From NCBI GenBank assembly GCA_051294905.1, contig CM119380.1, positions 20,646,001 to 20,710,000 of the forward strand: DNA of 64,000 nt. Direction: 5' to 3'. Positions 3,078 to 50,164 of this stretch are shown one piece after another. Each line of letters opens with the position of its first letter. The first letter of the stretch is position 1. The translations under genes and the position numbers were made by a program. The notes beneath the pieces were generated by a model. It made no database searches. It worked only from the letters and a program-made list of their open reading frames with translations, and was not told where the DNA came from. This DNA comes from Botryllus schlosseri. Lineage: Eukaryota.

Positions 3078-5498
3078 TATATCTTCACGTATGATTTCGG
3101 TGGTTGTGATCAAGAGACGATGCCGACGATACCTTTCTCCTACAACGCTATTCCTTGTAAAATCTCAATGGACTTGGAACTCGACTTGCTGTTTAGTAAA
3201 GAGAGCACGATTTATCCAAGACGTAATGTGATGATATCGCATTGCTCCCTATGGGATACGTGCACATTCTTGAAGAAGACATCATCCACGCTTCGAACTA
3301 ATGAAACACAGCCTCTTGTTTATTGTGAGGCACGAAGCAGCTCTGCTGTGAGTCACCATCATACTCTCTCTACAGTTGCAAAAGGTGTAGATATTACATG
3401 TACGCCGTTGTGTGGTGTGGCAACTGAGTATCTTCAATCAATTCGTAGGAGCAAAGGAACAGAAGATTCAGAGTCTTGTCCTAGTACTTATACAAGTCCT
3501 GCGTTAGACAAAGTGATATCTTTTTGCTACATTGCGTGTGTTCGACCAGCTATTGACTGTATAAATAACTGTCCTTCTACGATGGGAGGTTGCTGCTGTG
3601 GGCTTCGGAAATCCAACGATGGCGCTCAGGATACATCGGAGATATTGTACTTCCCCTCGGACTACCATCGCTTTGTGCGGCATTCCGTTCCCGCGACAGA
3701 TGAATTAGTTCGGAAAAGGCGCAATGACTGTCATACAGCCCGCAGTGAGAGTTACATAGGACACGAATCAAAGCTACAACAACAGGGATGCTTGACAATG
3801 CCAAAAGATTTTTGCGTACTTCAGAAAAGTGCAGAAGATTCGAATGTTCCATCCACAAGAGATGACGGCTCACACCGATGTATAGTGAATGCGGATGATA
3901 CGATTAAGGAGGCTCCATGTCCCGTTACTTCTAGAAGCAGAAGTATAGAACCGCTTATTGTAGAAGAACAGTTTGGTGAATCATATTATCTATGGCTCGG
4001 CGTTCAGCATGAAGTAGCAGAGGATTGCGTTTCCCAAGATAAAGTACAACCTACCTCGCCTGTCAAACTATCCAATCAAGAAAACTTTTTCCTTTGTAAA
4101 GATCTTACTGATCCACGATGCTCTGTAGAATCAAATATTGCTTCCTGTACAAAAAATCTCGAAGTCACCAATTCTGAAGTGTTTATATCGCAGTTTAGAA
4201 ATACTGGAGATATTAAAGCAGAAATGAGTCGCACCTCTTCACTGCCAAATGAAGATACTGCCATTGATTTTGAAAAAGGGACATTCCATGATGATCACAG
4301 CAATGTTCTCATACGCGACACCCCTTTGGTAACATGTATCACTTCTGTATCGCATCCCACTTTAAAGAAACGTTACCTAGTGACTGAAGCATGGAAAAAA
4401 GGTTTGCTTGATTATGAAACGGCGGTGATACTATTGGAAGGCCAAATCCAAGCTGGTGGTATTGTGTCTATAGGGCCGTCTATTGTCGAAAAAGCACCCT
4501 GCCTTCATTTAGTCTCTGTGGTGGAAGCAAAACGTAAAAGCTTGATCGATACGAAGATGTATGATAGACTGAAACTCTTCGAGGACTCTGTAAAATGTGT
4601 TATTGCCGCTTCCCTGGAAGGTACTAGTAAATATAATTCGAAATCGAAGACTCAAATGCGGATGGTGCAACTACAATCTAATTTAGGAGGTATTATGGAC
4701 TTTACAAAGCTGGAACTTGTGACCTTGTCTGCCGGCGTTGAAAAGGGTTTGATCAGCGATGACATTGCTGTTGATTCTTTCAATAGACAAATTGTCAGTG
4801 GTGGTATCGTAAGCAGACTACCATTAAGTAGGCTACCTTTATCCGAAGCGGTGAATTCCTGTTTGATATCTCAGGAACATGCTGAAACTATGAAGCCTGT
4901 CGAGTTGCTATATCAAGGCATCGTCGACCCAATTTCTGAAGAAGGCACCACCTACGCAATGTGCGTTCGCAAAGGGTTGGTAACCAGAGAGGCGGTGGTT
5001 GATTTTCTATTTAAACAAGCCTTGCAACATGGAGGCTGGATCAGGAATTGCTTCACAAATGAGTGGCTGCCGATCTCTCGCGCAATGCATGAAGGAATGA
5101 TCGACATCAGCATGTGGACCGCTGTGGAACAAGCGTTATCGCAAAATAAGCAAGAAGCATCGTTGATCCATCCGTTTTGGTTGAGGCCAGTGTCATATTT
5201 TGACTTTCTGAAATCAGCAAATACAGAAGATGGGGACTTATCACGGTGCAAAGTAATCAGCGCTTGCGATATGTTCGATGGGATGTACGATTCTAGAAAT
5301 CAAGAAAGGATCTCCATTTTTGAAGCATTGAGAAGGGATATGACCGATCAACTCACAGCCAAACGCCTATTAAAGGCACAGTTAGACAGTGGAGGGTTGG
5401 TAGATATTGAAAACAAAGAAAGAATCCCGGTCAGTACAGCTTTAACCAGACAAGTTATCGATTTTCCGATGGCGATTTCTCTTGTGCAACAAGGCAAG
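3078..5498 (+). CDS. MACF1: Giant exon (807 codons): disordered Ser/Cys-rich segment followed by plectin (plakin) repeats
   Basis: Pyrimidine tract plus CAG acceptor at 3077, phase 0; open frame to donor AAG|GTAAGT. Plectin-repeat signatures include AWKKGLLDYETAVILLEGQIQAGGIV and LLKAQLDSGGLVDIENKERIPVSTALTRQVID. The ORF track starts at ATG 3120. Confidence 0.85.
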
Positions 5499-5746
5499 GT
5501 AAGTTATCTCGCATTTTTTAGGAGGTGAGTCTACTTTATGCATTAGTAAACACTAAACACTAATCTCTTGCTGTAGGCAACTGTTGCTGGTAATTTACAC
5601 TAAACTGAACACGTGCAGGTTTAGATTTCCTATACTTCCATGCATGTATCTTTTCGCAATTCGTGCACGTTACGATCGCTTTATATTCTACATTTATTTC
5701 CGAGTAAATATTTTCGGATCATGCAAACAATATGTATTAACACCAG

Positions 5747-5881
5747 GTTGAGCCATCAAATCTGGTGGACACAGATGCTTATGATGAGGTCAATGAACAG
5801 TCTCTTGAAGACTTAGTGGAAACCGACATGGTACATCCGACTGACATGCTGGAACTACTGCAAGCAGATGGCTACTTCAAG
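5747..5881 (+). CDS. MACF1: Plectin-repeat cassette exon
   Basis: CAG|VEPSNLVDT...LLQADGYFK|GTAATC, phase 0-0. Confidence 0.8.
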
Positions 5882-5940
5882 GTAATCGAAACCAAGTGTT
5901 ACTTTGATTCAGATATTCAAAATCACTTTTTTCATTTTAG

Positions 5941-6107
5941 GGAATCCTTGATGTGAAGACAGGCAAAAATATTGATATAGCAACTGCTGCTAATCGCGGT
6001 CTTATTTCAAAAACCGCTGTGCTGCAAGTTCTGGGTACTGACGATCAAATCAAGGGAATATTGGATATATCGACTGGTGACACCATGTCTGTCGGTGTTG
6101 CTACAAG
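5941..6107 (+). CDS. MACF1: Plectin-repeat cassette exon
   Basis: GILDVKTGKNIDIATAANRGLIS; phase 0-2. Confidence 0.85.
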
Positions 6108-6227
6108 GTACGCTAAATAATCCTTGTTATTATTTAAAATTGCTACTAACATTTTGCGAAAAAACGGTGACATTTGCTTTGAAAGCATTGACCTTTGGCG
6201 CTTGTCAGCTCTAACCATCTTTAACAG

Positions 6228-6472
6228 ACATGGTATTATTGATCGCAAAACTGGGATGCGCATTTTGGAAAGGCAAGTGGCGAGCGGTGGTCTCTTGAGA
6301 CCACCTACATTCTCGCATAGCGAACCGGATGATGTAGTCGAAGAAAAGTTGAGAATTTTAGACGCAGTGAAGATGGGCATTGTCGACCCTGTGTTGGGAA
6401 GGAAATTGTTAAGAACTGAGAAGGCGCGAGGATTCACTTTGATTGAAGACGATTGGTCCGATCAACTTTTAG
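6228..6472 (+). CDS. MACF1: Plectin-repeat cassette exon
   Basis: HGIIDRKTGMRILERQVASGGLL...AVKMGIVD; phase 2-1. Confidence 0.85.
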
Positions 6473-6526
6473 GTGAGGATTGCAGTCGATCATTTTGACC
6501 GTGTGAGATATTGAATTCCTCTTTAG

Positions 6527-6624
6527 CCGAATTGGATGAAAATGATATGGATGAAGTGAATTTAAAAGAAGTAATCAAGGATCAGCTATGTGCCCTGGGC
6601 GGTGTACTCGATCCAAGAACAAAG
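6527..6624 (+). CDS. MACF1: Plectin-repeat cassette exon
   Basis: ELDENDMDEV...QLCALGGVLDPRTK; phase 1-0. Confidence 0.8.
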
Positions 6625-7319
6625 GTTCGTAACACTTTAGTTTTTAGCCATGCTCATTATGTCCTGTAAAATGTATTGTCGTTCTATAGTACAGTGGTTC
6701 TTGACTATATCCCTTGTTGCTTTGAAATCACCAACTAGCTCATATTCCTATTTTCGAATGACTGGAAGATATGACACCCTTGTGTATAGTAAGGAGATAA
6801 TTATTTATATTTAAACAAAATCCAAGTTAAAAATGACATCAAAAAGCAACCTGCCGAATATTTCTCGAACGCCGCAATACTTAGTCCTAACATGAGCGAA
6901 ATAATTGGACACTAATCCAAAGCGTAACGAAGAATGTATTCAATAGGTTATTGTATTGTAATTGTATTGGGCACAATGACAATGTGGTAAATATCTAGGA
7001 AAGTCGCAACTTACTTTATACCCTATCTGATGATCCAGTCTGCCGCCCACCAAAAATATGGCTAGCCAAGGACCATAGATTAGTCACGAAACAAAAAACT
7101 ATCACATTACACGATGGAAACCTACTATAGTATAGAATACTGGCGCCCAATATTAACAATGAACATGTAAATGTAAAATATGTAAATTTTAACATGATTT
7201 TCACACAAAACAGAAAGATTATAATGATTAGTTACTACAAATATCACTGTGATTTCTGCTTTATAGGCCGGATGTGTGTCTTCAGCAGGTCCCTGAGACT
7301 CGCTTTACAAACCCCTGGA

Positions 7320-7853
7320 CTGGGTTGTTATTACTCGAGTCGCGATTTTTCGGTGACTCGGCCTGTCACTATACTCGAGTCAATTTTTTTGTTGGCTTGA
7401 CTAGTACTCGAGTCATTGTGCATGACTCAAACCAAGTTATATCGCTCCAGACTAGGACAGCCAAGACAGACATTTCATTGTAACTTCGAAGATTCGTTAA
7501 GTCACCACATTTTTGGTATTTCGTCTATCAGTCCGGATACTTGAAAAATATGGCCAGAAACTGTTAAGACTTAGGAAAATTTCTATATTATGAATGCGAG
7601 CCATTCTATATCCTTCGAGCAGAGTTGAAGAAAGGGGTTTGAACAGGATTGAACTGAAAACTGAACAGTGAGCATATTGACTTGGACTCGGACTTGTGTC
7701 AAACACTAATACTCGGACTCGACCCTCAACTAATTTACTTGGACTCGGACTTGACTCGGTGGTGAATTGAAAGTGACTCGACTTGACTCGATTCAAAACT
7801 GTAAAAGTGAGATTGACTCGTGACACGGAACCTTGTACTCGGTTACAACCCAG
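7320..7853. mobile_element. hAT-type MITE family A (GACTCG/CGAGTC-rich), copy 1
   Basis: TIR CTGGGTTGT...ACAACCCAG; aligns by eye with 8527-9094 and, inverted, with 28276-28731. Confidence 0.75.
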
Positions 7854-7928
7854 CCACCGGGGTTCGTGTGAACCTCGGTTAATAACCACCGATTTAGCAT
7901 TTTGCAATGACGCATCTCGTTCTTGCAG

Positions 7929-8265
7929 GAAATCTTGCCGTTGCATGTCGCCGTGTCCCGTGGCTTGCTGACGGAGCAGTTGTCCGCCGAGTTGATGCAA
8001 AACCAATCTCCAATCGCAAGAGCATTCGCTTCAGAACAATACGCCAATCCGAAATTTCGATCCAGCCTGGATTCGATCACCGAAGCAGAGGAATTGGTTT
8101 CCTCCTCTTCTAGCGACTCTGAAGAACCCGTGAAAGTTTTCGATACAATTATGGCTCGTAACAGAGCTTGGCAAAGGCACGAGTCGAGAAAATGTCGCTT
8201 TAGACACCGGCAAATGTCTACCATTTACGAAGAAGATGAAGAAGTCGCTATCGAGCCAACATCCG
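7929..8265 (+). CDS. MACF1: Plectin-repeat cassette exon with disordered linker
   Basis: EILPLHVAVSRGLLT...MSTIYEEDEEVAIEPTS; phase 0-1. Confidence 0.8.
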
Positions 8266-8526
8266 GTAATTTGAGTAGACTTAGTGGTAGCATTGGGCAC
8301 TATCGAGTACCGGAATATTCTAGCATCACAAATCATTAAGCCATAATATGACAAATGACTTGTGAAGTTCAATTATGCATATTTTATTCAGACACAAGGA
8401 AAAATGCCAATTACATAACATCTAGAATACCAGAAAATTGAATTTGAAATACTTTTCGAACATATTTATTCCATGGCGTTTTGCGACAATGCGGTGAGTT
8501 GATCTCAGTTATCACTAACTATTTAT

Positions 8527-9094
8527 CAGGTTTGTAATGATCGACTTATGATTTCACTCGAGTCACGATTTTTTGGTGACTCGACTTGACTCGAGTCATT
8601 TTTTGAAATGAGTAAAATGACTCGACTCGACCCAAGTCAATTTTGAATTGTACTCGAGTCATTGCGCATGACTAGAACCAAGTCATTTGACTTGAAACTA
8701 GGACGGCCAAGACAGACATTTCATTGTAACTTCGAAGAATGGTTAAGTCCCATCATTATTAATATTTCGTCTATTGGTCTTGGTACTTGGAAAATAGAGT
8801 CGAAAACTGATAGCACTGAGGATAATTACGATATTATGACTGTGAGTCATTCGATATCACTCAAGCTGAGTTGAGAAAGTGGGTTGAACCGGATTGAACT
8901 CAAAACTGAACAGTGAACACAATCAGTTGGACTCGAGTCACAACACTATGCATCGGACTCGACCCTTTACTCACTGACTTGGACTCGGACTTGACTCGGT
9001 GGTGAATTGAGAATGACCCGACTTGACTCGAGTCAAAACTATGTAAACGAGATTGACTTGTGACTCGCAACCTTGTTACTTGATTACAACCCTG
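8527..9094. mobile_element. hAT-type MITE family A, copy 2
   Basis: TIR CAGGTTTGTAAT...ATTACAACCCTG; 8-bp TSD CTATTTAT/CTGTTTAT (7 of 8). Confidence 0.85.
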
Positions 9095-9388
9095 CTGTTT
9101 ATCACGTAGTACCTTTATACATCATGTTCTGAATGCCGTGATACGATCAATCCAGTTTTCAAGGCTTCTATGGTGGAAAAGAAGTATCCAAACTATGAGC
9201 CTCGTTGATAATAAAGCGCTTGGGGATAGGGGCATAAAATTGTCTTCATAAAATATCGCTATAAATTTTCAGTCAACTACACGTAGATATATCCACTATC
9301 GGAAATATCTTCACTGTTCAGTTGAAGCCACTTCTTTGCGGCTTACTTGTAAATCATCGCAGCGCATGTTGAGCAAAGTTGTTTTCAG

Positions 9389-9533
9389 GGCGAAAAATGA
9401 CCTTGGGCGCTCTCAGTCGAAAATCCGCGATCGATGTACATACCGGGTCTCGCGTGTTGGAAGGTTTAAATCCGTCTGGTCAAATCACAATCCATCATGC
9501 TCATGACGACACAACTTCTGCGTCAGAAGAAAG
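9389..9533 (+). CDS. MACF1: Plectin-repeat cassette exon
   Basis: RKMTLGALSRKSAIDVHTGSRVLEG; phase 1-2. Confidence 0.72.
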
Positions 9534-9601
9534 GTAGATTCACTTTTGCCTCAACACAGTCTACACTGATCCTAACATAGTTCTACTTTACGTCGCTATA
9601 G

Positions 9602-9800
9602 GCAGAGCAAAATGCACATCATCGAAGCATTTAATCGAGGACTGCTGAATGAGACGGTTGCGTTTCGTCTGCTGGAAGCGCATTTGGCTCAAGGCGGCAT
9701 TCCCGATCTTGAGAGTTACGAACGACTTACTCCAGAGCAAGCGTTGCAGCGTGGGTACATCACTGAGGACATGGCAGAGAAGCTGATCGTTGCTCTTAAA
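9602..9800 (+). CDS. MACF1: Plectin-repeat cassette exon
   Basis: MHIIEAFNRGLLNETVAFRLLEAHLAQGGIPDLESYERLTPEQALQRGYIT; phase 2-0. Confidence 0.88.
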
Positions 9801-9857
9801 GTATGTTATTTTCTTATCGCTAATCCCGTACACAGTCTTATTTACTGTGTTTGACAG

Positions 9858-9986
9858 AATTTGTTGAAGGAACAGGCGCAAATGTATTTGTTTCGTATCA
9901 AGGAGTATGTGACATGGTGCACTTCGATGATGTCAGATATAAGCGAGTGTGATCTCATGGACCGCGTTGAAAGGAAAAACGCTCTG
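9858..9986 (+). CDS. MACF1: Cassette exon, spectrin-like helix A
   Basis: NLLKEQAQMYLFRIKEYVTWCTSM...RKNAL; phase 0-0. Confidence 0.75.
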
Positions 9987-10818: not shown

Positions 10819-11085
10819 GAATCACTATACGAAAACGCCGCACCTGAATTAAATGCCATCGGCGATTGCTTGGACGAACTCGATTTATTCCTGGACCGCG
10901 AGCGCTGCCGACTAGATGCGTTCAGGATCAATGAACTGATCGTGCTGTCTAGCGACCTGCGGGACCGTGTCCACGAAATCGAAAGAGCCCTGTCAACGGA
11001 TCACCAAGTCGTGATAACCACCCGAAAATCCATGATGGCCGGTGCCGGTCCACTGTCGGAGACATCGACGGAATCGTCTGACGGA
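10819..11085 (+). CDS. MACF1: Last cassette exon, degenerate spectrin repeat (3' boundary uncertain)
   Basis: TAG|ESLYENAAPELNAIGDCLDELDLFLDRERCRLD; weak donor GGA|GTAAAA; the ORF otherwise runs to a stop at 11217. Confidence 0.65.
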
Positions 11086-11800
11086 GTAAAATGTTTGAAA
11101 CACGCATGGGCTTCGTACTGCGTCGTTGACCGATGGACACGAACTGCACGGAATCCGCCTAATACTTTTCCATTTACTGTCGGTTGTTTGCAGCACCGTT
11201 ACCTTTGTGCGATTTAGATTAGGCACAATGCTTGTATTTTCAATTTACAACCACTTTACCGTGTCTTGCGAATATGTGTGCGATATCTAACTCACTTCGT
11301 TTGCTTATAAGCGCGGTTGCCATCAGCACGGGTAAAACTCTGAGGATAGGCAAACACTTTTGAGTGACTTAACTGCCAGAATTTGTACCCTGTTACACAT
11401 TTGAGAAAATGATATCAAAAAAGGTCATCACTATTGCCCAGTGCTAACCATGGCCTCATTACAATCTTGTCTAGTAGAAGCCTTCATTCGTATCATCTGT
11501 ATAACTATTATGACCTGTGTTCTGCTTTGAAGCTGAGGTCATAAGACTGAATCTTCTGAATAAAGATAATGTAGTTCTAAATCAGGACGAATGTTATTAG
11601 TAAGGATGGTATGGCAACCCTGCTTATAAGTGATAAAGTTACGTAGAGCCTCGGCATGAAGCATTCCTTTGTGGTTAGAATGTAAACGTTTTCAAACAGC
11701 ATGCTTGCACACGCCATGCCCGTTTATTTTCTTCTATTTTGCACCCACATCTCTGCCCAAATGTTATTCCTTGATGTTCACATTTTTGTTAACCGCTCAG

Positions 11801-11977
11801 TTTGCACTCGACGAGGGCCTTGCCAGTAATCTGGCTCGGTTGGAGGATTTGGATAAGGAAGCCGACGCGGTCGGAGATAAGTTGAGAGACATGTCCGAAG
11901 AGGTTGTTGACAGCAGAGTGGAGTCTCCGGAAGAAACAGACCTTGAACAACTGCAAAAGCAACTTGAAGAAATCATG
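11801..11977 (+). CDS. MACF1: Spectraplakin rod exon
   Basis: FALDEGLASNLARLEDL...QLEEIM|GTAAGA; phase 0-0. Confidence 0.85.
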
Positions 11978-12699
11978 GTAAGATCTCTTCACAGTTGGAA
12001 AATGTCGATGTTCTATGCATTCATATGTATGCGGAGGTGAGATGGTCAAATTAGTCAGCATTGGTGCTGGGCTAGAGAAATATGCAACACCGTAAATTTC
12101 TACTCGATTTCTAGTACCGTATAACTAGAGATTTTCAAGACATTTCAAAACTACTTGAATGAGAAGTAGAAAACGGTCTAAAAAGTAGATAAGTAAGCAG
12201 TTCCGAAATATATAAAATGTTCGCGGGTCTTAATTTTAGCGGTTAATCGGAGGCCTCTACTTTTGAAAATGCAAGATGCGTATTCACGACTAATGAAAAA
12301 TGGCTATTGACACTGTAAAGGATGCAATTTTTGGAAATAAATCCGACTACTGTGATACAGGGACTATTTCCCCAATTTTTACATGACAATTTCACTCGTA
12401 ATGGTGATACAAACATACCCACTGCTACTTTCTGGTTTACAAAATAAAAAATTTATAGAAGTATTTGACCCTAAAATTTGTGATGCAGAAGGGGGAGTAG
12501 ACCAAGACGTAACCACTTCAATAAGTAGTGCAATTAGGTAGAATTACTTGAGTACTCCAAAAAAGTAGTAGTACTTCATTACTGACCACTTCTGTTACAC
12601 ATCGTAGCTGTTTTGATACTGTCGATAGCTAAGTCAAGGCGGAAAGGTCTTATGCACATTATAATATTTATATTGACCAAAGTGAACATTTCTCTACAG

Positions 12700-12933
12700 G
12701 CTATCCAGGCCGGTGTTGCGTTCAAAAACCCAGAAGTTCAGGAGGCAACGACAGAAGCCGACGCCTTCGTTGATGAAAATGGCGACCGCCTGCAGCCCGA
12801 CTTGGCGGAAGAACTCAAACACGCCTCTTCCAGTTTGGGTCGCAAATGGGAGATCATGCAGGAGGCGGCGGAAGCCAAAATGACTCAACTGCAGGAGCAG
12901 CTGAGGTCGGCGCAAGACGTCGGACAGAGAAAG
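12700..12933 (+). CDS. MACF1: Spectraplakin rod exon
   Basis: AIQAGVAFKNPEVQ...SLGRKWEIMQ; phase 0-0. Confidence 0.88.
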
Positions 12934-13844
12934 GTAAAGTGCTGCAGAGGTCTCGAAATTATCAGTCATCGCCTGTGTTATGAAGTCCAGACCTAAAATC
13001 GGTGGTATAATAGAATGAATTTGTAACTGTTTACATTTTTTTGGTGTAATTAGAGTTTTTAAATTACCAAGGTAAAGTATATGACTCTCAAAAACAACGA
13101 GGAAGATTGAATATTTAGTGAACCATGAATTAACACTTTATCAATGAATAATATTTGTCGGAATGTCCGAAATCTACAAGGATGTTCTTACTGGATGGCT
13201 AGGTACTGAGAATATAATGTTTGTTATCTTTAGACTGCAGACTTGTACTGTGACGAACTGGTTATTGAGCAAAAATGTCGTAAATGATATGGTTTAATAA
13301 AATCAAATAATTTTACGTCAGGCGGGTAGCACACTGTGCGATTAATCTTTAGTTACTTGGCCAGTAACTGTATCTGCATTGCTCGTCGGTTGTCAGGATC
13401 TTAATTCCTAATCACTGAAGCAGCTAGAAATGGTCAGTAACGAAGCAGATCTAGGCTCCATAGTAGGCTACTCAAGTTTTGCCTACCCGCACTAACTTAC
13501 TAGAAAGGTATTAGACTACTCTCTTTTCACTATGCCGATTTTGCAAAGGAGAAATTAGGTCTGCATCGCCTTTGTGAAAGAAATTGTTGTCAGAACCGTG
13601 TGAAACTGCCTCTATGTCACGGTGACTACATGTTCAGAGATTGTACCTTTTTGTAGTTTCAATAACCATCTTGCTAATCCTACTTCTACTTGATTAGCAC
13701 TGCTGTTTCCTTCGGCCACCCCTGAAAGCATCTCGAATCTATCCAGAGATTGCTCCATTCTCCCTGGCCAGGATGGGTATAGGATATACATAACAATCAA
13801 TGTCTGGATCTTCACATCTTTATAACAAACACTTGTTGTTCCAG

Positions 13845-13991
13845 GCTGCTGCCGCCAAGGCCTTGGCCGGTTGGGAGCCTGCTCTCGACGAGGTACGTGA
13901 GTGGGCGGCGGATAGCGATCGCAAATTGATGGAACAAAGACCTTTAGCACTGGATGAAGACGAAATCGCCGCTCAGCAAGACACAGCGATG
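13845..13991 (+). CDS. MACF1: Spectraplakin rod exon
   Basis: AAAAKALAGWEPALDEVREWAADSDRKL; phase 0-0. Confidence 0.87.
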
Positions 13992-14060
13992 GTATGGCGA
14001 TTCGTAGCTACTAGGCAAATTGAGTATTCCGTAACGTGTATTACGTATTTCCACCTGTAG

Positions 14061-14294
14061 GACCATCGGGACTCTATCACGTCGCCGCAACACCGCATCG
14101 AAGATATTCTGAGACGGTACGAGGCCTTCTTGAATTCTCCCGACGTTCCGCTTGTGCTCGACGACGACAGCCTGCGAAACAGGAAAGAAGAGGCGAAGTC
14201 TCTAGACGGGGAAAGACAGCGATTGGTTGACACTGCTGATCGGAGATGGAAAAGTATTTGCCACGCGAAAGACGAACACGGCCAGTTCGTTCAG
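14061..14294 (+). CDS. MACF1: Spectraplakin rod exon
   Basis: DHRDSITSPQHRIEDIL...RRWKSICHAKDEHGQFVQ; phase 0-0. Confidence 0.85.
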
Positions 14295-15304
14295 GTAGAC
14301 ACCTAGCTATATTATAATATAATATTTTTATACATAGTATGAAATTCAGTATATTGTTTTCGTTTGCCGACGGCCCGCTCGCTTGTTACAAATGCCCTAA
14401 ATTTGAGATCGTAAAAAATATGATTTTGAAAAGCATATACATATTGAAATGAGCCCGAATATGTCCGTCTGACAATCGTCTGGGGTAATCGTCAGCAGCT
14501 ATGAGTTGCTGACGATTATCATCCCTGACGAGTGTCCGCCGGTCTTTTTGGGGTTCATTCCACTACGAATATACTTTTCTAATCGTCCATTGAAGTTCTG
14601 TACCTCCAAGAAGCTTTTCCTATATCATTTTAAACCAGCACCGATGATAACTTAGTGCTCGGAAGCGACCTGGTGTCAATTGGGGAGGGACGGGTATCAC
14701 GATTATATCGCTTCCGATTCGCTGCTAAAAGTATGCGAACCCTCGAGCCAATCTACTTTTCAAAACTGCTTACTTTTCGGGCCTTTCATTTTCCACTTTC
14801 AATTGAAGTAGTTTTGACAGTTCTTGGATTTTGCCACTTGTAGTTGACTAGGAACGCCGATTACTTTAACCCTTCAGGATGCATGCAGTGTTTGCCGTGG
14901 CATCTTCCATCGCTAGGACTTGGACAAATAGATCATTCTAATCACACTAATTAGAACAAAATGCCGCTAATCTAATTTTATTCTAATTTGTGAAATGTTT
15001 CCGTGCTCTTATTCTAATCAAATTTCCTGATGGGAACGTAATTCAATTTCGCAGTTTTGGGGAATTTCGGAAAAAACTGAAAGAAACTGTCCCAATTATC
15101 CAACTCTGCCCATGCCGGACGTTGAACATTCTGAAATACTACCCTGTTATCTGTTAGCTGTCAGCACGTGGGCGCGGTGTTGTTCGAAACCGATGCGACA
15201 CGCATATGTTGTTTATTTACCTAACTATTGACCGATGCTGTACTTGAGAAGGAAGATCGACAAACACTCATCTCTGCAATCTCGCAACGACTTTTCGATT
15301 TCAG

Positions 15305-15499
15305 AGTTTGAATCCGTTTCGCGACTGGCTGGAAGGCGCCACGGAAAGTATCGCGCCCGGCAAGACTCTGCCTGCCGAAATAGCGGCCTTGCAGGACCTG
15401 CAAAAGGACACCGCCGCTTTACAGAGCGAAATCGCGTCGCGCAAGGCTGACCTGAGATACTTGGGCATGACTTCCAAACGATTCACCGATGCTGCAAAG
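15305..15499 (+). CDS. MACF1: Spectraplakin rod exon
   Basis: SLNPFRDWLEG...KADLRYLGMTSKRFTDAAK; phase 0-0. Confidence 0.9.
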
Positions 15500-15569
15500 G
15501 TACCTGTTGGTTATTTATATTGTATGTTATTGACTTGATTCAATACTGTGACAATTTCAACGCACGCAG

Positions 15570-15686
15570 ACTTACAACGGCAGCCTATCGGGTGACGGTC
15601 AACGGCCTGAATCGGACCCTACCGAAGATGCGGTGGTGGCAGTGATGAAAGACACGGAATCTAATTATAATGACGTCACTGAGAAG
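15570..15686 (+). CDS. MACF1: Spectraplakin rod exon
   Basis: TYNGSLSGDG...ESNYNDVTEK; phase 0-0. Confidence 0.82.
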
Positions 15687-15703
15687 GTTCGTGTTTTGAA
15701 TTG

Positions 15704-15900
15704 TAGCGGTGGTCAGTAACGAAGTACTTGAAATTTCTCGAAATACTCAAGTAGGCTTTAAGTAGTTGTACAACTTCCTCAAGGGTTTATGATTGTAAAC
15801 TGACGGTACCTATACTTATAATTAACGATTTTCGGTTATTTAAGCAAAAGTACGCCTGCAATACTTACTTTTTCACTTACTAAGAAATAGCTGCTTTTAC
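15704..15900. repeat. Interspersed family C (end CAGAGGTGGTCAGTAACGAAGTA; TACTCAAGTA/TACTT-rich); other pieces at about 12500-12593, 13428-13530, 17807-17915, 28140-28937, 38505-38600, 39794-39900, 50712-50950 and 59255-59500
   Basis: Recurrent terminal motif and its reverse complement TACTTTGACCACC(T/C)CT; boundaries approximate. Confidence 0.65.
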
Positions 15901-16870
15901 TTGTATATGTTTAAACAATACCGGATCCGACTGCCGCGGATAAGTCCTAGTATGCCCCGAAATCGCGCGGATTCTGTCTCAGATACAACTATTAAATCAT
16001 CTTTGCGTGAGGCATAGTTGGTTTACAATATATCCGTCTACCATCTATTTCGCATTTGACTTGCCGCTTACATTTGTGCGATACTGTCGGTTACAACGAG
16101 TGCGACTCCGCAGAGTGTAGCGTCGCGTGGGTAGAAATAATCTACTATTCAACTGTGATTTTCTGTTAATGGCGCTGCGGGCCAGTCGAGGATCTAAACA
16201 ACGTAGGTGTGCGAATATTGGCTCTTCATGCGGTTTCGCACGCTGCGCAGAGTCGCCGACGGAGTATCCACAATGCCTTTAGCACAATGTCAACACGGGA
16301 CACGTGATTTCGCGCTCCGAGATATTTCCCGTCATTTCATACAGGCTTGATATATTGCTGGTGTCGTACCCGTGACTAGAGGAAGAATTCAATTATACAT
16401 TCCGACTGCGTAATCACGGCCCTATCGTCGCGTGTATTGTAAACTTTATTGACTCTAGATCTCAACCGCTGGTCCTTGTAGACTTTTCCAACCCGCCAAA
16501 TGTACCACTGCCGTCGGACACTTGTCCATTATTTACAATTGATTTCGAAATATGGAACGTATTTATCTGCATCTAGTCGTAATGTAGAGTTCGTGGTATA
16601 CTTCGGGCTTAGCGTACGTCACAGTACAGCAAGTGTTGTGCCAAACTATTTAAGAGATTGGGAGATCCTACTTGGTCGTTTCGGTATCCTACTATCGGTT
16701 CATTACGTGACATAGTGTTTAGTGTATCGCATTGTACATTGTGCGGGTAAAAATAATAAAAACGCCGAATATACCTACTATTAAGGAGCCTAATATGTGT
16801 TTATGACGAGCTAAATGTAAAAGTTAAGATAACTTTTTAAAGAAAATTCAGTCGATTTTGAGAGTATAAC

Positions 16871-17049
16871 CATAGTGTCCTGCAATGGTGCGGACACAAG
16901 CAAATCGCACGGCTCACTGCGATTGATTTACGTCACGCTCTCCATTTGGCTAAAGGCAATTTTGACAGTAATTTTTGAAAAGTGTAACGTAAATCAAACG
17001 CATTCAGGCGTTAGATTTGCTTGTGTCCACACCATTGTAGGACACTATG
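16871..17049. mobile_element. Internally deleted copy of the CATAGTGTCC foldback family
   Basis: Same termini; 7-bp TSD GTATAAC/GTATAAT; inserted into an older repeat also seen near 35100-35400. Confidence 0.8.
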
Positions 17050-28731: not shown

Positions 28732-28825
28732 CTTCGGAGCAAGGCACTTTTCAGAGTACCGAGTACTCAATTACGTTTTGCTTACTAACACTCCTTCCTC
28801 AGGTGATTGCTAATTTACACTACTA

Positions 28826-28865
28826 TTTATACTTATACTTATAGTTATACTTATACTTATACTTA
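28826..28865. repeat. (TATACT)n microsatellite
   Basis: Direct reading. Confidence 0.8.
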
Positions 28866-29211: not shown

Positions 29212-29538
29212 CAAATTAAAGACGCAGTAGCTGCCCGGGCTTCCGACGTAGACGAAGTGAAATCGGCGTGCTCCGCCATCTTGGGCGGCGGCGACAGTCA
29301 AACCACCGACTCTCTGCACAAGAGGCTGTCTAAGATGAGCGAGCAGTTCGGTCAGCTCGAGCACGCGGCCAAAGAAAGAAACATCGACTTGGAGGATATG
29401 AACGGGAATTTGGGCGAGTTCGAGCGCGAATGCAAGAGATTGTCGGACTGGATCGAAGACACTTTTGAGACGGTCGGAGATGATGACGTTTCCAAAGTGC
29501 CGGAAAGCGAGATTCCTGTCTTAGAGAAGAAAATCGAG
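29212..29538 (+). CDS. MACF1: Spectraplakin rod exon
   Basis: QIKDAVAARASDV...KRLSDWIEDT; phase 0-0. Confidence 0.88.
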
Positions 29539-30623
29539 GTAATACTTGTTTCGAAAATGGAAATTATCGACAGCAATGTCCAAACGAGAATTGGAACTTC
29601 TGTAGATTTACTTTTGTTGACATGTTTACCTTGACTATAACAGTGGTTCTCGCCCTTAATGGCATGAAGACCCGTAAATTTCAAAACAGATTTTATGTAC
29701 CGGTGAACCTTCACAAATCAAAATTAGACCAAATCTAACTGAATTCTACTGAATGAAAGTAACGAATTCCTTTTATCAAGTCTGCCTGGCTTTCACGCAT
29801 TATTGTTCTGAAACAAGTTCTAATACTTTTAAACAGATTGGTGCCACAGTTCCTGCATTTTGAGGTATCTTAAGTCCAAACTAGACAGTGAACTTTATAT
29901 TACGACAGGGTGCGGAAAACTATATTTAAAATTTCTAAATCAATTAAAAAGTTTGTGTTTAATTTCGCTAATCAATAGACAAGTGTCCAACTTTATGCAG
30001 TTTACAGTTGAGATATATAGCTTACTATATCATAATACAATACACAGTGACCACAAATCACATGTGACCAGTCACAGAAAAGTCGAATTAATTGTGGTAG
30101 TATTTTTGACAGACATTTTTTATAAGTGCAGCAGCATATGATCGCACTTGATCAAATCATCTTCATTTTGTCATCCTTCTCGAAACGACACTGTTTGCTT
30201 TTATTCTAGAAATGTAACCGTCTTTGTAGTACTTGTTGTCATACAGAACACAGACAAAGATCACAAGGAATATATATCTATTGACTGACGATTTTAGGGG
30301 ATTGGTTACCATCTGTCAATAATACGAAGTGACAAAAAGTAATTTTTACACCGGGTCCTCTAACGAATGAATAGTTTGATTAAATTTGCCTAGGAAAGTT
30401 TCTAGGTCGATGACTATTATTCTCTGATACTAACATTGACTGTGATATCGTAGCTGCTCGCTGACATCGAAAATTTTCTCTCTTGAAACTATTGACGTTG
30501 TCACCACTCTCATATACTACGATTTTAATTTTACAAATCCCTACCTGATTTATTTAGCACTGAGCATTGAGCAAACACACAGCCCCTATCGAGCACTTTT
30601 TAATTGCTTCGATCCCAATTTAG

Positions 30624-45099: not shown

Positions 45100-45300
45100 A
45101 CAATCAAACCAGACGAGTACGAACCCAGCGTCAAAACGGTCAAAAAATGCACAAAGGAGCTGTCACGATATGCGTCTCGCTGGGGAGAAGAACCGCTACA
45201 ATCTGTTGCCGCCGATGACGAAGCCAGATTCAACGCACTGAAGGACGCCCTGGGCCGATACCAGGCGTCCAAGAAACAGGCTGAAGAAAAGCTGGCGGCA
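45100..45300 (+). CDS. MACF1: Spectraplakin rod exon
   Basis: TIKPDEYEP...SRWGEEPLQSVAADDEARF...EKLAA; phase 0-0. Confidence 0.82.
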
Positions 45301-46318
45301 GTATGTTCCGTTTTGTTACCATTGGTGATTTTGCTGGTGTTAGTCTTACGACTTGATTTGCTCAAGAAAGGCTCCTTTGTCACCTAGCCAGTTGTTAGGC
45401 GCGGGTGAAGGGAAATATGTGGTTGCGTGGATACAGGTTGTGAACTTGGACAGGCAGTGAGAATATAGATTTTGAGAAATTCAGTGTTGGCTTGGTCTGG
45501 GAGAGGGTAGGTTGTGGCAGTCAAGTAACGGGAGCCGTGGAGAATATACATTATTAAGCAGCCAGGCATTTGTATTATCTGGAAAATAGGTTGAAAATAA
45601 CTCATGGTGTTTAACTTGAAGATTCTCCTGCATTTTGAACAGGGTTGTAAGGTCTTGTTAGAATTGGAGCATTGTTTACTTCGTAAACAGTATTTAATAA
45701 TTGCTTTTATAATCCTATAGTTCCGCTGTTAAGACTTTTCAAATCATGTGAAAAGTAGGTTCTATGTCAACAAACAATACGTTCAAATTGCCAAATTTAT
45801 TCCTCATGGACCCTTTTCGTCTGAGTCTCATCAGCGATCGGTTGTCACTCAATGTGGCTAGCCAAATTTGAAATATAGAACGAAGGTTCTCGTTAAGTCG
45901 TACTTCGAATTTGGTTAATCTCATGTACTAACGTTCGCTCCTGATGATGGTGCTTTGAGTGGAATAAATTTGGCAATATGAACTTATTGTTAGTTGCGAT
46001 GTTGAGGTATCGTACTTCGAGAAGCCTCTTTTTTTGTTTGACACTTGCGTCTTACCTTGCCTGGATAGCATGGCAGCGAACCTTAGTCACACGCTTCGCA
46101 TGAAACCATTAGAAAATGCGTGTCGGAATTCCCGTTGAACACTGCATAATCAATCTCCAAAAGTTCCTTAGTTCAAATTTTGGATCTGGCAACTAGGATT
46201 ACTGTATCAGTTCTCCATTCAAAGCAATGAACCTGGTTTTCACGTCGGCGATGTCGTAAGTAGTTGATTACCCGATATTGATCTACTGGTTTCAGACTTA
46301 GCCTAGCAGTAGTTCGCC

Positions 46319-46684
46319 ATGTTTTCTTACAATAAAAAAGTGCGATTGAAACCGTACGAAGTCCTGCCGCTGTCTGATTTCCACGTTGACCCCGACGCTC
46401 CCCCGCTGCGCATGCGCGCGCGCCCCGGGAAGATGTTTGCCTCGCACAGCAGGGCCGATCTAGCGCACGATTTCAACTCGCGCAACGAAATGGTGGCGCC
46501 CATGAACTTGCGAAGGCCCAAATCCGCGATGGAACTTTCCGACGCGAGCGCGCGAGATTTCGAGTCACGTGACTTCCGTTACGTCGCCGACGGCGTGCAC
46601 GACGAAATCGCGGAGAGCTCGAAAGAGCTGATCGAGTGCTTGCCGAAAATGACGGCTGTCAAGCCAGAGAAAAAGGAAGAGAGC
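46319..46684 (+). CDS. Nested cassette exon 1 (initiating; MFSYNKKVRL...)
   Basis: GCCATG start; in-frame TAG at 46310; upstream acceptor TTTCAG at 46295; donor AGC|GTGAGT phase 0. Confidence 0.75.
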
Positions 46685-47373
46685 GTGAGTATCTATCAAT
46701 CGGCCCTGTTCGGTTCGCAGTAGCTACGTAGATGGTACGAGAATGCGCCGGATATTACCGTGGTTTCTAATTTCTGCCTCTCTCAATATCTAATATTTTG
46801 TGTGCTTACGGAAACTAGACAATTCACAGTGTCTCGAATATTCGTTTTTTATCAATTCCTGATTGCAGAATAGTGATTTCGATATAGCATTTCAAGGTGG
46901 TATCTATACCGATGTTAACAATTTCCCCGGCTTTATTCGCATCAACTCATGATTCTAAATTCTCTCTCCAATTCTCTCTACAAGCGATATTATCTTAAAC
47001 TAGAGTTGGTCTGTAACTCAATTAGGTTAGGCTTACCTACTCGCGCTACCTGCGCAATTAGTTATAATTTTAGACTACACCTACTTCTATACATTTTAGT
47101 TTGCGGTTTTTTAGGCAAACCTAGGACTACTTTCATTGAAATCGATGATTTTACTTCACCAATAATTAGTTGCGTTACGTTATAACAGAGTACAATTGAG
47201 GAATAACAATTTAGCTACCTCTGTCAATAACGGTGTATTGTAATTGCGGTACTGGTAGTGTCTGTCAAGCATATCGGCCCATATGTTACGCTCGAAACGA
47301 CAATGTAACGGAATTTCGATTTTCTCTTTACAAAATGCTGTGATTATCACCGACTACATTTCCACATCTTCAG

Positions 47374-47465
47374 AAAGATTCGTTACCTTTGGACACACCG
47401 GCAACCGCTACGCGCGATTGCATGATGGTATATCCACAAAACACGGTGCCGATGGCTAAATACAG
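47374..47465 (+). CDS. Nested cassette exon 2
   Basis: CTTCAG|KDSLPLDTP...MAKY; phase 0-2. Confidence 0.62.
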
Positions 47466-47532
47466 GTGTGTATCCACACCGCGTACTACCAGTAAAGGTG
47501 TAAATCACACGCTAATCATGGGTCCTTCGCAG

Positions 47533-47719
47533 AAGGAAAATATCCGGCGAGTTACCGGATAGTGACGATGATGAAGCTCCTATGACCGATGCACAAAGGT
47601 GGAGCAAAGAGAAAACGCTTGAGTCCGAGTATAATCCTGGAAAAAACTCTCGCCGGAAGCGAAAACCGAGTCTATGGGCGGATCCGGATCCGGATGGAAA
47701 AAAGGCTTATGACCTTAAC
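47533..47719 (+). CDS. Nested cassette exon 3
   Basis: RKISGELPDSDDDE...KKAYDLN; phase 2-0, after a 67-nt intron. Confidence 0.65.
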
Positions 47720-47778
47720 GTATGGTGTTATGGTATTATTAATAAAGTTGAATATTACTAATAGCAATTTGCTATCAG

Positions 47779-47941
47779 GATCAAATACAAAAGCCTACTT
47801 ACATGGGTGAAGAGAGTATGGATGGCGAGACTATATCCACCCTGATCAATAAAGGATCTCGCCGAAAATCGTTCGCTGCCATAGGCACCATGGTGGCGAA
47901 ACTGAAAAAACGCAGGCAATCGGCCGGATATGACGAAAAAG
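47779..47941 (+). CDS. Nested cassette exon 4
   Basis: DQIQKPTYMG...RRQSAGYDEK; donor G|GTAAGA; phase 0-1. Confidence 0.7.
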
Positions 47942-48197
47942 GTAAGACTTGTCCGCAGAGGTAGACCAAGTAATCGTCGTTGGTGGTGAGGGAGAAGTAA
48001 CGACCTAGCGAATTTCCAAATAAGTGTTCTAGGCCTAGTTTTGGCTAAAATCATAGTCACTTAGTAAGTAGTGTAATTAGTCAATACATACTTGAGTGCA
48101 CCGAAAAAATATAGGTACTTCGTTCCTGACCGGTGATCACCTTTGCTCGTCCGTCCATTCAAAAAGCTTTTACATATACTGACATTATTCTTTTCAG

Positions 48198-50056
48198 ATG
48201 CCGACGAAATTTCAATTGTCGAACCCAAGAAACCCACAGTCGTGAAATTCAACATTCCGGACGACGAGGGTGGCAAGGCTTCCTCTGTATCTAACGAACA
48301 CACTCCCACCGAGGACTTGAGCAAAGTCGATTTGACTATGCCCCCTGCGCAATTCATGGACACCAGCACGATGATATCTTACAGCGAAACGCTGGTGCAT
48401 AGAATCGTTAACGACCGCAGAACCCCGGAAAACGTACTCAGTTTTCCCGCGCCGGCTCCGGTTATCACCCCGGCTCCGGTTTTCTCGCTATCCGCCATCC
48501 CAGAACACGACCGCGCCGAGACGGTCACTCCAAAAAACGCGAACGCACCGGTTTTTATCCGCCCGCCGGAGTCTCCGTTTGATAAATCCGATGACGCCAT
48601 CAGCGATGACGATTTATCCAGCGGGCGCCGCTCGCGGCGTCATAAGCGCCAGCGCAGTCGTGGTTACAGCCGAAATTACGGCAGCACGGCTGAGTTGAAT
48701 GACCCTGAATCCGAGAGAGAACGGCGCAAGCGACGCGAAGCGAAGCGTCTACACAGCGCGAAACGCGAAAGCGAGCGAGCGCGCGTGCAAAAGAGAAAAA
48801 GTTCGCGCAAGTCTCGCCGGCGCGGTAGCGATGTGAGAGAGAAAGTACGCCTTGACCGTCTAGATCGCGCTAAATCAGAGCGCAGAGATAGCAGCGAATC
48901 AACGGAGGAAGAGTCCTTTTTTAAATTTGCCTCCTTTCTAAAAGGCGGCGACGCCAAGTCTTCAGGCTTGAGCAAATCTGAGTCGTTCGCTATAGAGAAC
49001 ATAGCCCGCAAACTTATCAATCTCGTACAACAGAACGGCGATGCTAACGCGGAAGTCGGCACCGATTCGGATGTAGCCTTAATAGGGAAAGATACGGCTA
49101 CTCCAGTGCCACATCAAGCACAGTCCAATTACAATACAAACATGATCGATAATGTAGATTCAACGCCGCTGATTCAAAACACAGTACAGTCAGACGCTCA
49201 GTCTGTGAGCACCAACTCGAATTGGCAACAAAATCAGAATTTTAACACGCCTAGCCGGCAACCGTCTATAACAGCCAACCCCGCGTGTCCTACAACTTCT
49301 CTCGTCACCGTAGTAAAACCGGACGACCTCCTGTCCGTCGCTGATATTTTCGAACCGAGAGACGGCGCCACACTCAAAACGGTCGTCCGCTTGCCGACCC
49401 TGCAACCGCGGGAAGGCGAAAACGAGGCCGCGCTACGCAGTAGGGTTGAAGATTTTCTAAACGGAAAAACGGAAGAGGGCGACTCGCATTTTCAGCAGGT
49501 ACCCGGCAGACGTTGGGTCGCGGAGTGGGCCAGGCGTGAGGAAGTGATAGGCAAGGCTGCCGAACGCGCTGAAAGCAAAAAAATCAAACGCAAACGTAGT
49601 TCTATCACGCGAAAACGCAGTATAAAGCGCAGCCCTTCAACCAACAGCATCGGCACCTTTTTCAGTAAGCTGTTCGGTAAATTACGCATTGATGAAGATA
49701 CCTCGGAACACAAAAACACGGAAGTCGTGGCCTGTGTTTACGCTGTCAATGAGAACGACATCACGCGACGTAATGACGTCACAATACCCGCTAGCACACA
49801 ACCAGTAGTAACCCCGGCGGCAGATACATCGACGTATGTAAACGCGCGTGGCAACGCTAGCACACAGCAGCCTATGTTGAATCGCTCTGTTTCTAAAGTC
49901 ACGTTTTTGGATGAGATAGCCCGCAGTAAAGATTCCGGGGTGTTATCTGACATGGGGCTTGAATCTGTGGATGAATACGGGCGGAGTCAAATCAAGTCCG
50001 GTGGCCCTACGCGACCTTGGGCGGCCGGAACTGGGCAGAGACACGGTATACGTTAA
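48198..50056 (+). CDS. Nested cassette exon 5 (terminal; disordered, Arg/Lys/Ser-rich)
   Basis: TTTTCAG|AT phase 1; 619 open codons to TAA; AATAAA at 50159-50164. Confidence 0.78.
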
Positions 50057-50158
50057 ACAGTGAATTCCGTCGTTAATTAGTTCAATATGTACAATACATT
50101 ATACAGCTCTCTCTTTATTTTCAAATACATTGATATTTCGAATGTGTGTGTTTATCTT

Positions 50159-50164
50159 AATAAA
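50159..50164 (+). terminator. Polyadenylation signal AATAAA of the nested cassette
   Basis: Canonical hexamer about 100 nt after the TAA, in an AT-rich UTR-like stretch. Confidence 0.5.

Follow-up and report, generated by a model that had tools for sequence, protein, structure and literature searches.

A sea-squirt spectraplakin gene probably makes membrane-anchored isoforms without the usual actin-binding head from a pair of internal start exons that other tunicates share

The N-termini of spectraplakins are known to vary between isoforms. In BPAG1a3, an alternative first exon gives a conserved N-terminal myristoylation motif together with potential palmitoylation sites (PMC3352950; bioRxiv 10.1101/122010). 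MACF1-4 starts with the plectin repeats and has no actin-binding domain (ABD), and MACF1c is also ABD-less (PMC4914211). In the Shot D-type isoforms the plakin domain is probably absent too (PMC4914211; 10.1101/122010). Alternative 3' branches have been described for vab-10 and dystonin (PMC3352950).

The locus reported here carries two N-terminal coding exons, head 1 and head 2, that can be compared with these systems. Both are likened by motif and architecture to isoform 3 of dystonin/BPAG1a3 (and MACF1a3), which also uses an alternative first exon of a spectraplakin gene. However, the vertebrate head stands ahead of the CH2 half of the actin-binding domain, and the plakin domain is retained, whereas the heads of the sea squirt would precede the plakin-repeat region or the rod directly. 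The predicted head 1 product shares its architecture with MACF1-4, for which, in contrast to head 1, no acylation motif is reported in the papers cited here. MACF1c and the Shot D-type isoforms have no lipid-anchor motif, unlike heads 1 and 2, and the predicted head 2 product would differ from them further in lacking the first rod exons (10819-15686).

The host gene and its internal start modules

The window, i.e., the whole analysed stretch of 64,000 nucleotides of Botryllus schlosseri, covers the middle part of a + strand spectraplakin gene, in which plakin-repeat exons are followed by a spectrin-repeat rod. Plakin (plectin) repeats were recognized in 3078-5525 (Pfam PF00681, E=1.9e-24), and orthologues also carry PF00681. 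Downstream on the same strand, exon 29191-29631 matches Pfam Spectrin above the cut-off (E=7e-7) and 56239-56634 gives a weaker match, and rod exons are joined by splicing in RNA run X4. The window ends within the rod; the CH actin-binding and plakin domains would lie upstream of it and the EF-hands/GAR microtubule-binding C-terminus lies beyond. The host exons considered are:

2214-2378, + strand, start approximate: upstream constitutive exon with an open frame; donor AAG/gtatga at 2378, phase 0
5748-9974, + strand, approximate span: several further plakin-repeat-region exons, from tblastn of relatives' ORFs
10819-11085, + strand: exon that the RNA of a relative joins immediately to the plakin-repeat exons (match to contig L005), without a Pfam call of its own; phase 0/0
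15570-15686, + strand: rod exon, canonical partner of exon 25550 (RNA run X4); phase 0/0
25550-25705, + strand: rod exon, presumed acceptor for head 2, in a spliced X4 contig; phase 0/0
27233-27383, + strand: rod exon with a GT..AG joint in an X4 contig, depth 135
27845-28056, + strand: rod exon with a GT..AG joint in an X4 contig
45100-45300, + strand: rod exon preceding the cassette intron, from sequence; phase 0/0
50369-50491, + strand: rod exon following the cassette intron, from sequence; phase 0/0

The exons at 25550, 27233 and 27845 are spliced together in a single X4 contig. Donor 2378 could be joined in phase 0 to any of the acceptors 3078, 10819 and 11801. Since phase 0 is the rule in this gene, as in the five phase 0/0 exons above, phase compatibility is weak evidence by itself.

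A preliminary description had placed at least three internal start modules in this gene, with ATGs at 3582, 24263 and 46319. All three ATGs and the sequence features named for them are present, including the upstream acceptors (3077/3078, 24154/24155 and 46295/46296), and every phase-0 assignment is correct, though it follows the rule of the locus. Two of the modules do open with Met-Gly and a Cys cluster, reading MGGCCCGLRK at 3582 and MGNSCCSCRK at 24263. Across all six frames of the window, exactly two places have MG with at least three Cys among the six residues that come after it, both on the gene strand, with 0.075 per window expected in block-shuffled sequence. These two openings are not chance, and they are conserved as N-termini in other tunicates.

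Met-Gly, a Cys cluster and basic residues together form the signature of N-myristoylation and S-palmitoylation with an electrostatic patch. The NMT pattern of the PROSITE PS00008 type (Gly2, small uncharged residue 3, small residue 6) fits eight of the nine N-termini available, six for head 1 and three for head 2; the exception is the head 2 orthologue P0002, with Arg at position 6, where NMT prefers a small residue. In each of the nine, residues 3-9 include 2-4 Cys and residues 7-16 include 2-6 K/R, with C4, C5, C6 and K10 invariant in head 1 and C5 and C8 in head 2. Both heads share Met-Gly, nearby Cys and basic residues with the MGC/MGN type of dual-acylated N-terminus (Src-family SH4 domains, herpesvirus UL11, AP1AR/gadkin), a resemblance at the level of the motif and not of homology. 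Comparison of both heads by a protein language model gave look-alikes that include Cyclin-Y, UL11 and AP1AR clusters, with scores of only 0.57-0.75, which serve as a lead only; of these, UL11 and AP1AR are acylated.

The unit at 46319 and the 5' ends of the head transcripts

The third module was not borne out as a head. It has no acyl motif, is only phase-compatible, and looks like a complete gene that ends in a stop and a poly(A) signal of its own:

46296-50165, + strand: nested five-exon unit, exons 46319-46684, 47374-47465, 47533-47719, 47779-47941 and 48198-50056

Rebuilding this cassette (46319-50056) gave an uninterrupted ORF of 888 aa with GT-AG at all four introns. The ATG at 46319 follows acceptor 46295/46296 and has an in-frame stop two codons upstream, the first exon ends at donor 46684, and the unit closes with a stop at 50054 and AATAAA at 50160. 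Its Ser/Arg/Lys/Asp/Glu-rich composition suggests a disordered protein, and searches gave no Pfam match, no homologue and no look-alike in the protein atlas. The cassette is transcribed, and its sequence occurs in RNA runs; those of study P3 contain 0.21-0.34 of its words versus 0.27 for DNA run X7. With its own start behind a stop, its own introns, its own stop and its poly(A) signal, it has the features of a nested gene and is most simply read as an independent same-strand gene within a rod intron. KIAA0754, a same-strand ORF within human MACF1 that is co-mentioned with MACF1 in papers, is a candidate parallel; the cassette itself has no detectable homologue.

The cassette could instead belong to the spectraplakin itself, as a third head (46684 to 50369), as an alternative 3' end (45300 to 47374, in frame, with a separate poly(A) signal behind the stop at 50054), or as both. 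Both joins are phase-0 compatible, the cassette is transcribed and lies on the strand of its host, and the branches of vab-10 and dystonin cited above offer a precedent. Such membership is nevertheless unlikely: the unit is self-contained from start to AATAAA, joining 45300 to its first acceptor at 46296 leads to a stop after one codon, and phase 0 is in any case the usual phase here.

As for the 5' ends of the two heads, the orphan acceptor that shortly precedes each ATG most probably serves a spliced leader or marks the end of a short leader, and the transcripts would then start from intronic promoters. It has to be weighed whether the heads might need no internal promoters at all, a long primary transcript being alternatively trans-spliced, with a spliced leader added at about 3550 or 24155, where the orphan acceptors lie. 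A pyrimidine-rich AG does lie 5-110 nt upstream of every head ATG in every species examined, but chance alone should supply an AG within 40 nt, and a cis donor further upstream would normally outcompete trans-splicing. Neither 5' ends nor spliced-leader reads were seen in the RNA reads aligned to 23001-29000, and this route to the heads is regarded as decidedly improbable.

Two start exons conserved in other tunicates

Head 1 lies downstream of the strong acceptor 3077/3078, in the open frame 2982-5525, whose C-terminal half holds the plectin repeats identified by Pfam:

3078-3581, + strand: open, unconserved stretch from acceptor 3077/3078 to the ATG, before which the frame is open for 200 codons
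3582-5498, + strand: head 1 coding exon, with MGGCCCGLRK, EILYF, RRSSLEP..LGES..LWLG and then plectin repeats; donor 5498, phase 0

Five orthologous ORFs (P0003-P0007) all have MG[GAN]CCC, K/R and EILYF, and two of them begin exactly at the head 1 Met. Across six species M1, G2, C4, C5, C6, K10 and E20-F24 (EILYF) are invariant. Downstream of the Met, the window matches the loci of four relatives with E values of 1e-6 to 1e-25. Upstream of it, where L006 and L007 are just as open, blastp found no similarity between their proteins and that of the window (E>0.9), and the DNA similarity with L006 begins only 7 nt before the ATG. An in-frame stop precedes the Met by 2 codons in L004 and by 21 codons in L005. 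The latter is a spliced RNA contig from a relative, and its first in-frame ATG is that of the head 1 MG. Its single continuous ORF matches window positions 5798-5887, 5935-6624, 7926-8324, 9385-9528 and 9612-9974, and its residues 507-580 match 10819-11040, so that the contig links the head 1 exon via plakin-repeat exons to the exon at 10819; this linkage comes from the relative's RNA only, with one intron retained. A protein begun at ATG 3582 would pass without a break into the plakin-repeat region and from there to the rod.

The open codons upstream of the head 1 Met, 200, 247 and 376 in the window, L006 and L007, are too many for chance, and in these three the Met should therefore also be internal to a longer isoform. 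The 200 unconserved codons of the window suggest dual use of the exon, which here probably doubles as an internal exon through acceptor 3078; the stretch 3078-3581 would be a 5' leader or, in transcripts with the exon in an internal place, a linker that evolves fast. A stricter version holds that there is no start at all, MGGCCC being an internal Cys cluster (e.g., a palmitoylation or metal site) of a long isoform with plakin domain, plakin repeats and rod, and Met-Gly being incidental. The long open stretches and the strength of acceptor 3078, which is phase-compatible with donor 2378, would fit. This version is very unlikely, given that Met-Gly is invariant in all six species, that protein and DNA similarity set in at the ATG, and that L004 and L005 have the upstream stops and, in L005, the first in-frame ATG noted above.

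Head 2 sits in the 9.9-kb intron 15687-25549 and is a real exon:

24155-24262, + strand: head 2 5' leader after orphan acceptor cattcag/CG; in-frame stop at 24206
24263-25054, + strand: head 2 coding exon, 264 aa, with MGNSCCSCRK, a polybasic run and conserved islands; donor GFSE/gtaagg, phase 0

Only two matches were found among 1.84 billion cluster representatives, ORFs P0001 and P0002, which open with MGNAC..C and a polybasic run; for the two heads, neither database search gave an annotated public protein carrying either of them. In the window and two other tunicate samples, M1, G2, N3, C5 and C8 are invariant and three islands (Y(L/M)EVSDMGTQ, KFVT(K/R)G..PVY and EDEGI.A..F) are conserved; the variable, gap-rich alignment suggests that the protein segment may be mostly disordered. 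In-frame stops precede the Met by 18, 1 and 8 codons in the window, L001 and L003. The GTAAG donor falls at the same codon in all three, and the ORF tails past it are unrelated. In L001, orthologues of rod exons 25550, 27233 and 27845 come next after the head 2 exon, the first of them at a distance of 645 bp. Head 2 most likely splices from 25054 to 25550.

RNA run X4 covers head 2 in the shape of an exon, with contigs at 24172-24495, 24554-24854 and 24825-24955. Cover extends over 24172-24955 and on into the 25001-25200 bin at a depth of 3-19; the rod has a depth of 135, and head 2 stands at 3-14% of rod depth. Cover is zero in the flanking intron bins, with none in 23201-24171 or 25201-25400. 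The canonical 15686 to 25550 junction is carried by X4, where 255 loose letters before 25548 match 15663-15684. The 25054 to 25550 joint is absent among the 15 X4 joints listed, with 36 further joints in 23001-29000 not listed. About 36 raw RNA reads of X14 fall on roughly 24150-24310. Raw runs X14 and X16 have no reads on the rod at all and are hence uninformative at the 95% likeness cut-off; this cut-off, combined with a strain divergence of about 3-5%, is a plausible reason. The head 2 product would be a minor isoform that has neither the actin-binding, plakin and plakin-repeat regions nor the beginning of the rod.

The thought that head 2 is instead a small gene of its own with a single exon (299 aa here), or else an intronic exon that yields no product and is not spliced to the rod at all, draws on the X4 joints listed, on an ORF that runs 35 codons beyond the donor to a stop at 25160, and on the database entries P0001 and P0002 being called as stand-alone ORFs, but it has little chance of being right, because conservation ends exactly at the donor in three species with read-through tails of 2, 7 and 35 residues, X4 cover stops before 25201-25400, the place about 500-650 bp before the same rod exon is conserved, and both junction phases are 0 in two species.

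Reading of the locus

The preliminary description held that lipid-anchor heads are set at differing depths of the rod in place of the actin-binding/plakin head. This stands in so far as two heads are conserved, have in-frame stops upstream in several species and show similarity from the Met onward, which, together with the MG being the first in-frame ATG in the relative's RNA contig, speaks for a Gly at the N-terminus; it is qualified for head 1 of the window, which has its 200 open codons upstream and may also serve as an internal exon.

The gene thus probably makes membrane-anchored versions without the usual actin-binding head. As a whole, the locus is best explained, with moderate confidence, by two internal alternative first coding exons with acyl-type openings, head 1 leading into the plakin repeats and head 2 into the rod, and by the cassette as a nested gene. 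Lipidation, membrane targeting, tethers of graded length and reach to the microtubule-binding end are what we infer from these sequences. A broader proposal is tentative and stands on the doubtful side: that one tunicate spectraplakin gene holds a conserved set of dual-acylation heads, one before the plakin repeats, one within the rod and perhaps another ahead of the window, each giving a giant ABD-less tether that is lipid-anchored to a membrane at one end and extends to the microtubule-binding end at the other, and with 5' ends perhaps made by alternative spliced-leader trans-splicing at the orphan acceptors and not by dedicated promoters. As alternative first coding exons inside a spectraplakin gene, heads 1 and 2 would extend the known N-terminal isoform diversity of the spectraplakins.

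Head 1 and the plakin-repeat exons

The plus strand of the window carries a large multi-exon gene. Plectin repeats are present in the open frame 2982-5525 (Pfam PF00681, E=1.9e-24), and spectrin repeats (PF00435) pass the cut-off on 29191-29631 and match more weakly on 56239-56634. A contig from the RNA run X4 joins 25550-25705, 27233-27383 and 27845-28056 via GT..AG introns, and a second X4 contig leads into exon 25550 out of one that ends at 15686. The window thus covers the plakin repeats and rod of a spectraplakin, whose actin-binding and plakin domains, like its EF-hand and GAR end, fall beyond it. A tRNA-Arg (CCT) gene is located in a rod intron on the plus strand, at 58046-58120.

The preliminary description had proposed at least three internal initiation modules in this gene. 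Its coordinates were all correct when the sequence was read again, and the two openings in which MG is followed by a Cys cluster are distinctive: the pattern of MG and then at least three Cys within six residues occurs in the six frames at 3582 and 24263 only, both on the gene strand, and shuffled sequence yields 0.075 matches per window. These two heads proved to be conserved across tunicates; the third module, a five-exon cassette, is most simply a nested gene.

Features discussed as alternative starts
3582, plus strand: ATG of head 1 (MGGCCCGLRK), in the plectin-repeat frame
24263-25054, plus strand: exon of head 2 (MGNSCCSCRK)
46319-50056, plus strand: five-exon cassette in the rod intron between 45100-45300 and 50369-50491

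A search with the plectin-repeat half of the head-1 exon recovered five orthologous ORFs, 47-60% identical, in five Logan samples. All five carry MG[GAN]CCC and K/R, followed by (A/T)(P/S)EILYF and RRSSLEP..LG.....WLG, and M1, G2, C4, C5, C6, K10, E20, I21, L22, Y23 and F24 are invariant in six species. Conservation is confined to one side of the methionine. Two of the relatives' ORFs (P0004 and P0007) start exactly there, and a stop lies two codons upstream of it in contig L004 and 21 codons upstream in L005. No protein similarity between species was found 5' of it (blastp E>0.9), whereas the 200 residues that follow match four relatives' loci at E 1e-6 to 1e-25. DNA similarity between the window and contig L006 begins 7 nt 5' of the ATG.

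Contig L005 (SRR3402057) reads like spliced RNA. After its MG exon and one retained intron comes a single 598-codon ORF, which matches, in order, 5798-5887, 5935-6624, 7926-8324, 9385-9528, 9612-9974 and 10819-11040 of the window. In the window, as in the genomic contigs L004 and L007, these blocks lie on separate exons. L005 has no in-frame ATG before the MG codon; the upstream 'M' of the ORF caller is a TTG. Therefore, in at least one relative, a transcript that is non-coding 5' of the MG codon runs through the plakin-repeat exons to the match of 10819-11040, an exon in which no Pfam match was found.

In the window and in the contigs L006 and L007 the frame 5' of the head-1 methionine is open for 200, 247 and 376 codons, respectively, lengths far beyond chance.

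Open stretches 5' of head 1 in relatives
L006:4134-4877: 247 codons, no conservation between species
L007:4405-5535: 376 codons, no conservation between species

Such open but unconserved stretches suggest a linker selected just to stay translatable. A strong phase-0 acceptor is present at 3078 in the window. In these three loci the head-1 exon probably has two uses, as a start and, following a fast-evolving linker, as an internal exon; the internal use resembles MACF1b.

Head 2 and the rod exons

For head 2 (24155-25054), profile-free HMMER found only two relatives among 1.84 billion cluster representatives, P0001 (SRR10746997 and SRR10746996) and P0002 (SRR25569774), both of them stand-alone ORF calls on Logan contigs. 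A homologue search within a length window returned P0001 only, with no protein of Botryllus schlosseri and no support derived from annotation or cDNA. Both relatives start with MGNAC..C and then a lysine/arginine run, and M1, G2, N3, C5 and C8 are invariant among them and the window, which also share the islands Y(L/M)EVSDMGTQ, KFVT(K/R)G..PVY and EDEGI.A..F. The exon has the same limits in the three species: the ATG is preceded by an in-frame stop at a distance of 18, 1 or 8 codons, and similarity is lost at a GTAAG donor placed at the identical codon, with unrelated read-through tails beyond it. In contig L001, 645 bp after the head-2 exon, comes an exon orthologous to rod exon 25550 (61% identity, phase-0 acceptor), and then orthologues of 27233 and 27845.

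X4 contigs cover 24172-24495, 24554-24854 and 24825-24955, and cover continues into the 25001-25200 bin. Their depth is 3-19, versus 135 for the rod, with no or almost no cover in the flanking bins 23201-24171 and 25201-25400. Head 2 is thus a discrete exon of minor expression, as opposed to intron background. The joint 25054->25550 is not among the 15 joints listed, a further 36 being unlisted; the donor and position of the exon, both conserved, and the lack of intron cover nevertheless lead us to infer it. In two further RNA runs, X14 and X16, raw reads placed at 95% likeness gave no reads on rod exons and partial matches at about 24150-24310 and on repeats; roughly 36 X14 reads lie on the former interval. 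A lower likeness threshold is appropriate for such placement because divergence of the X4 contigs from the window reaches 5.6%.

X14 depth drops from 23 to 3 at position 24301, where a GTGATA (24301-24302, phase 0) directly follows codon 13 (MGNSCCSCRKATD, then gtgata). An alternative donor at this site, giving a mini-head, fits the X14 cover, yet it is not conserved in L001 and is unsupported. About 1 kb 5' of head 2, within the 9.9-kb intron that holds both, a 603-nt X4 contig (depth 6.3) lies on 22581-23184 and overlaps the minus-strand ORFs 22829-23179 (116 aa, no Pfam match) and 22807-23109. This block may represent an antisense gene or a leader exon; no convincing donor was found for its use in front of head 2, and such a use would conflict with the minus-strand overlap. 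In the upstream half of the window, CpG o/e peaks in 22000-23000, at 1.8. CpG-island profiling was rejected as a finder of intronic promoters, its peaks being uninformative in a window that is undepleted at any point (o/e 1.16 overall at 42% G+C). The same lack of depletion argues against heavy germline gene-body methylation of the spectraplakin gene.

An inverted repeat at 26536-27151, in an intron between rod exons, has 302-nt arms that are 96% complementary and spaced by 12 nt; its summed contig depth in the DNA run X7 reaches about 480,000, and it has reads in the RNA runs too. Because of this enormous depth, it is a very high-copy foldback or MITE-like element. Further high-copy repeats at 28200-28800 and 23400-23800 show summed DNA contig depths of thousands to hundreds of thousands and many rearranged joints.

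The intronic cassette

The cassette (46296-50165) could be rebuilt as described, with an unbroken frame of 888 aa and GT-AG at its four introns.

Cassette exons, plus strand
46319-46684: first exon, ATG with a stop two codons 5'
47374-47465: second exon
47533-47719: third exon
47779-47941: fourth exon
48198-50056: fifth exon, stop at 50054, AATAAA at 50160

It is thus self-contained, from start codon to its own stop and poly(A) signal. The product is rich in Ser, Arg, Lys, Asp and Glu, a composition that suggests a disordered protein. It has no Pfam match and no look-alike in the protein atlas, where searches with the cassette and both heads scored 0.57-0.83, below a meaningful level. For the 637-aa cassette exon a homologue search gave nothing significant; low-complexity proteins saturated its 8000 word candidates, and absence is unproven. 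The cassette is transcribed, since the RNA runs of study P3, which includes X4, contain as many of its sampled words (0.21-0.34) as the DNA run X7 (0.27).

These features agree best with a nested same-strand gene, the simplest reading and one with a modest balance of probability in its favour. Alternatively, the cassette could serve the spectraplakin as a tail (45300->47374) or as a head (46684->50369). Both joins would keep the frame, and nothing beyond phase speaks for them; splicing of 45300 to the first cassette acceptor leads to a stop after one codon. The phase-0 compatibility put forward for the modules is true but carries little weight, since most exons at this locus are 0/0 (10819-11085, 15570-15686, 25550-25705, 45100-45300, 50369-50491) and compatibility is the default; it was dropped as evidence for module joins.

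Possible lipid-anchored spectraplakins in tunicates

A conserved myristoylation motif is known in BPAG1a3 (PMC3352950), and potential myristoylation or palmitoylation sites have been noted in dystonin lead sequences (bioRxiv 10.1101/122010). MACF1-4 starts with plectin repeats in place of the actin-binding domain, which MACF1c also lacks (PMC4914211). Four promoters are known for Shot, whose D-type isoforms are without the actin-binding domain and probably without the plakin domain (10.1101/122010). The acyl motif, the plectin-repeat-first start and the loss of the actin-binding domain are therefore each known separately. What is new is their combination and placement, with one putative acyl head directly on plakin repeats and a second directly on the rod. 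The heads are conserved in three to six tunicate samples, and homology searches returned no annotated public protein with either of them.

A PROSITE-type N-myristoyltransferase pattern fits eight of nine N-termini, and all nine contain 2-4 Cys in residues 3-9 and 2-6 adjoining basic residues. Openings of this dual-acylated type give stable membrane attachment, which may by analogy apply to heads 1 and 2. The head-1 product would then be a lipid-anchored spectraplakin with plectin repeats first, and the head-2 product a lipid-anchored rod without everything encoded 5' of 25550. The transcripts might arise from intronic promoters, or by trans-splicing at acceptors 5-110 nt 5' of each ATG. No copy of a Ciona-type spliced-leader pattern was found in the window, as expected for a leader added in trans.

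Spectraplakins are usually viewed as linkers of actin to microtubules, with N-terminal variants modulating the actin-binding head. A lipid-anchor opening shared by several tunicates would depart from this view: membrane-to-cytoskeleton tethering without the actin-binding and plakin domains would be a function under selection in this gene family, at least within the vertebrates' sister group. The heads offer short testable elements, N-termini of 13-40 residues with G2A and Cys-to-Ser mutants, in an animal for which embryo electroporation is routine. One review already mentions a conserved additional exon as a possible alternative start (bioRxiv 10.1101/122010), and vertebrate MACF1 and DST deserve re-examination for internal starts missing from their annotation.
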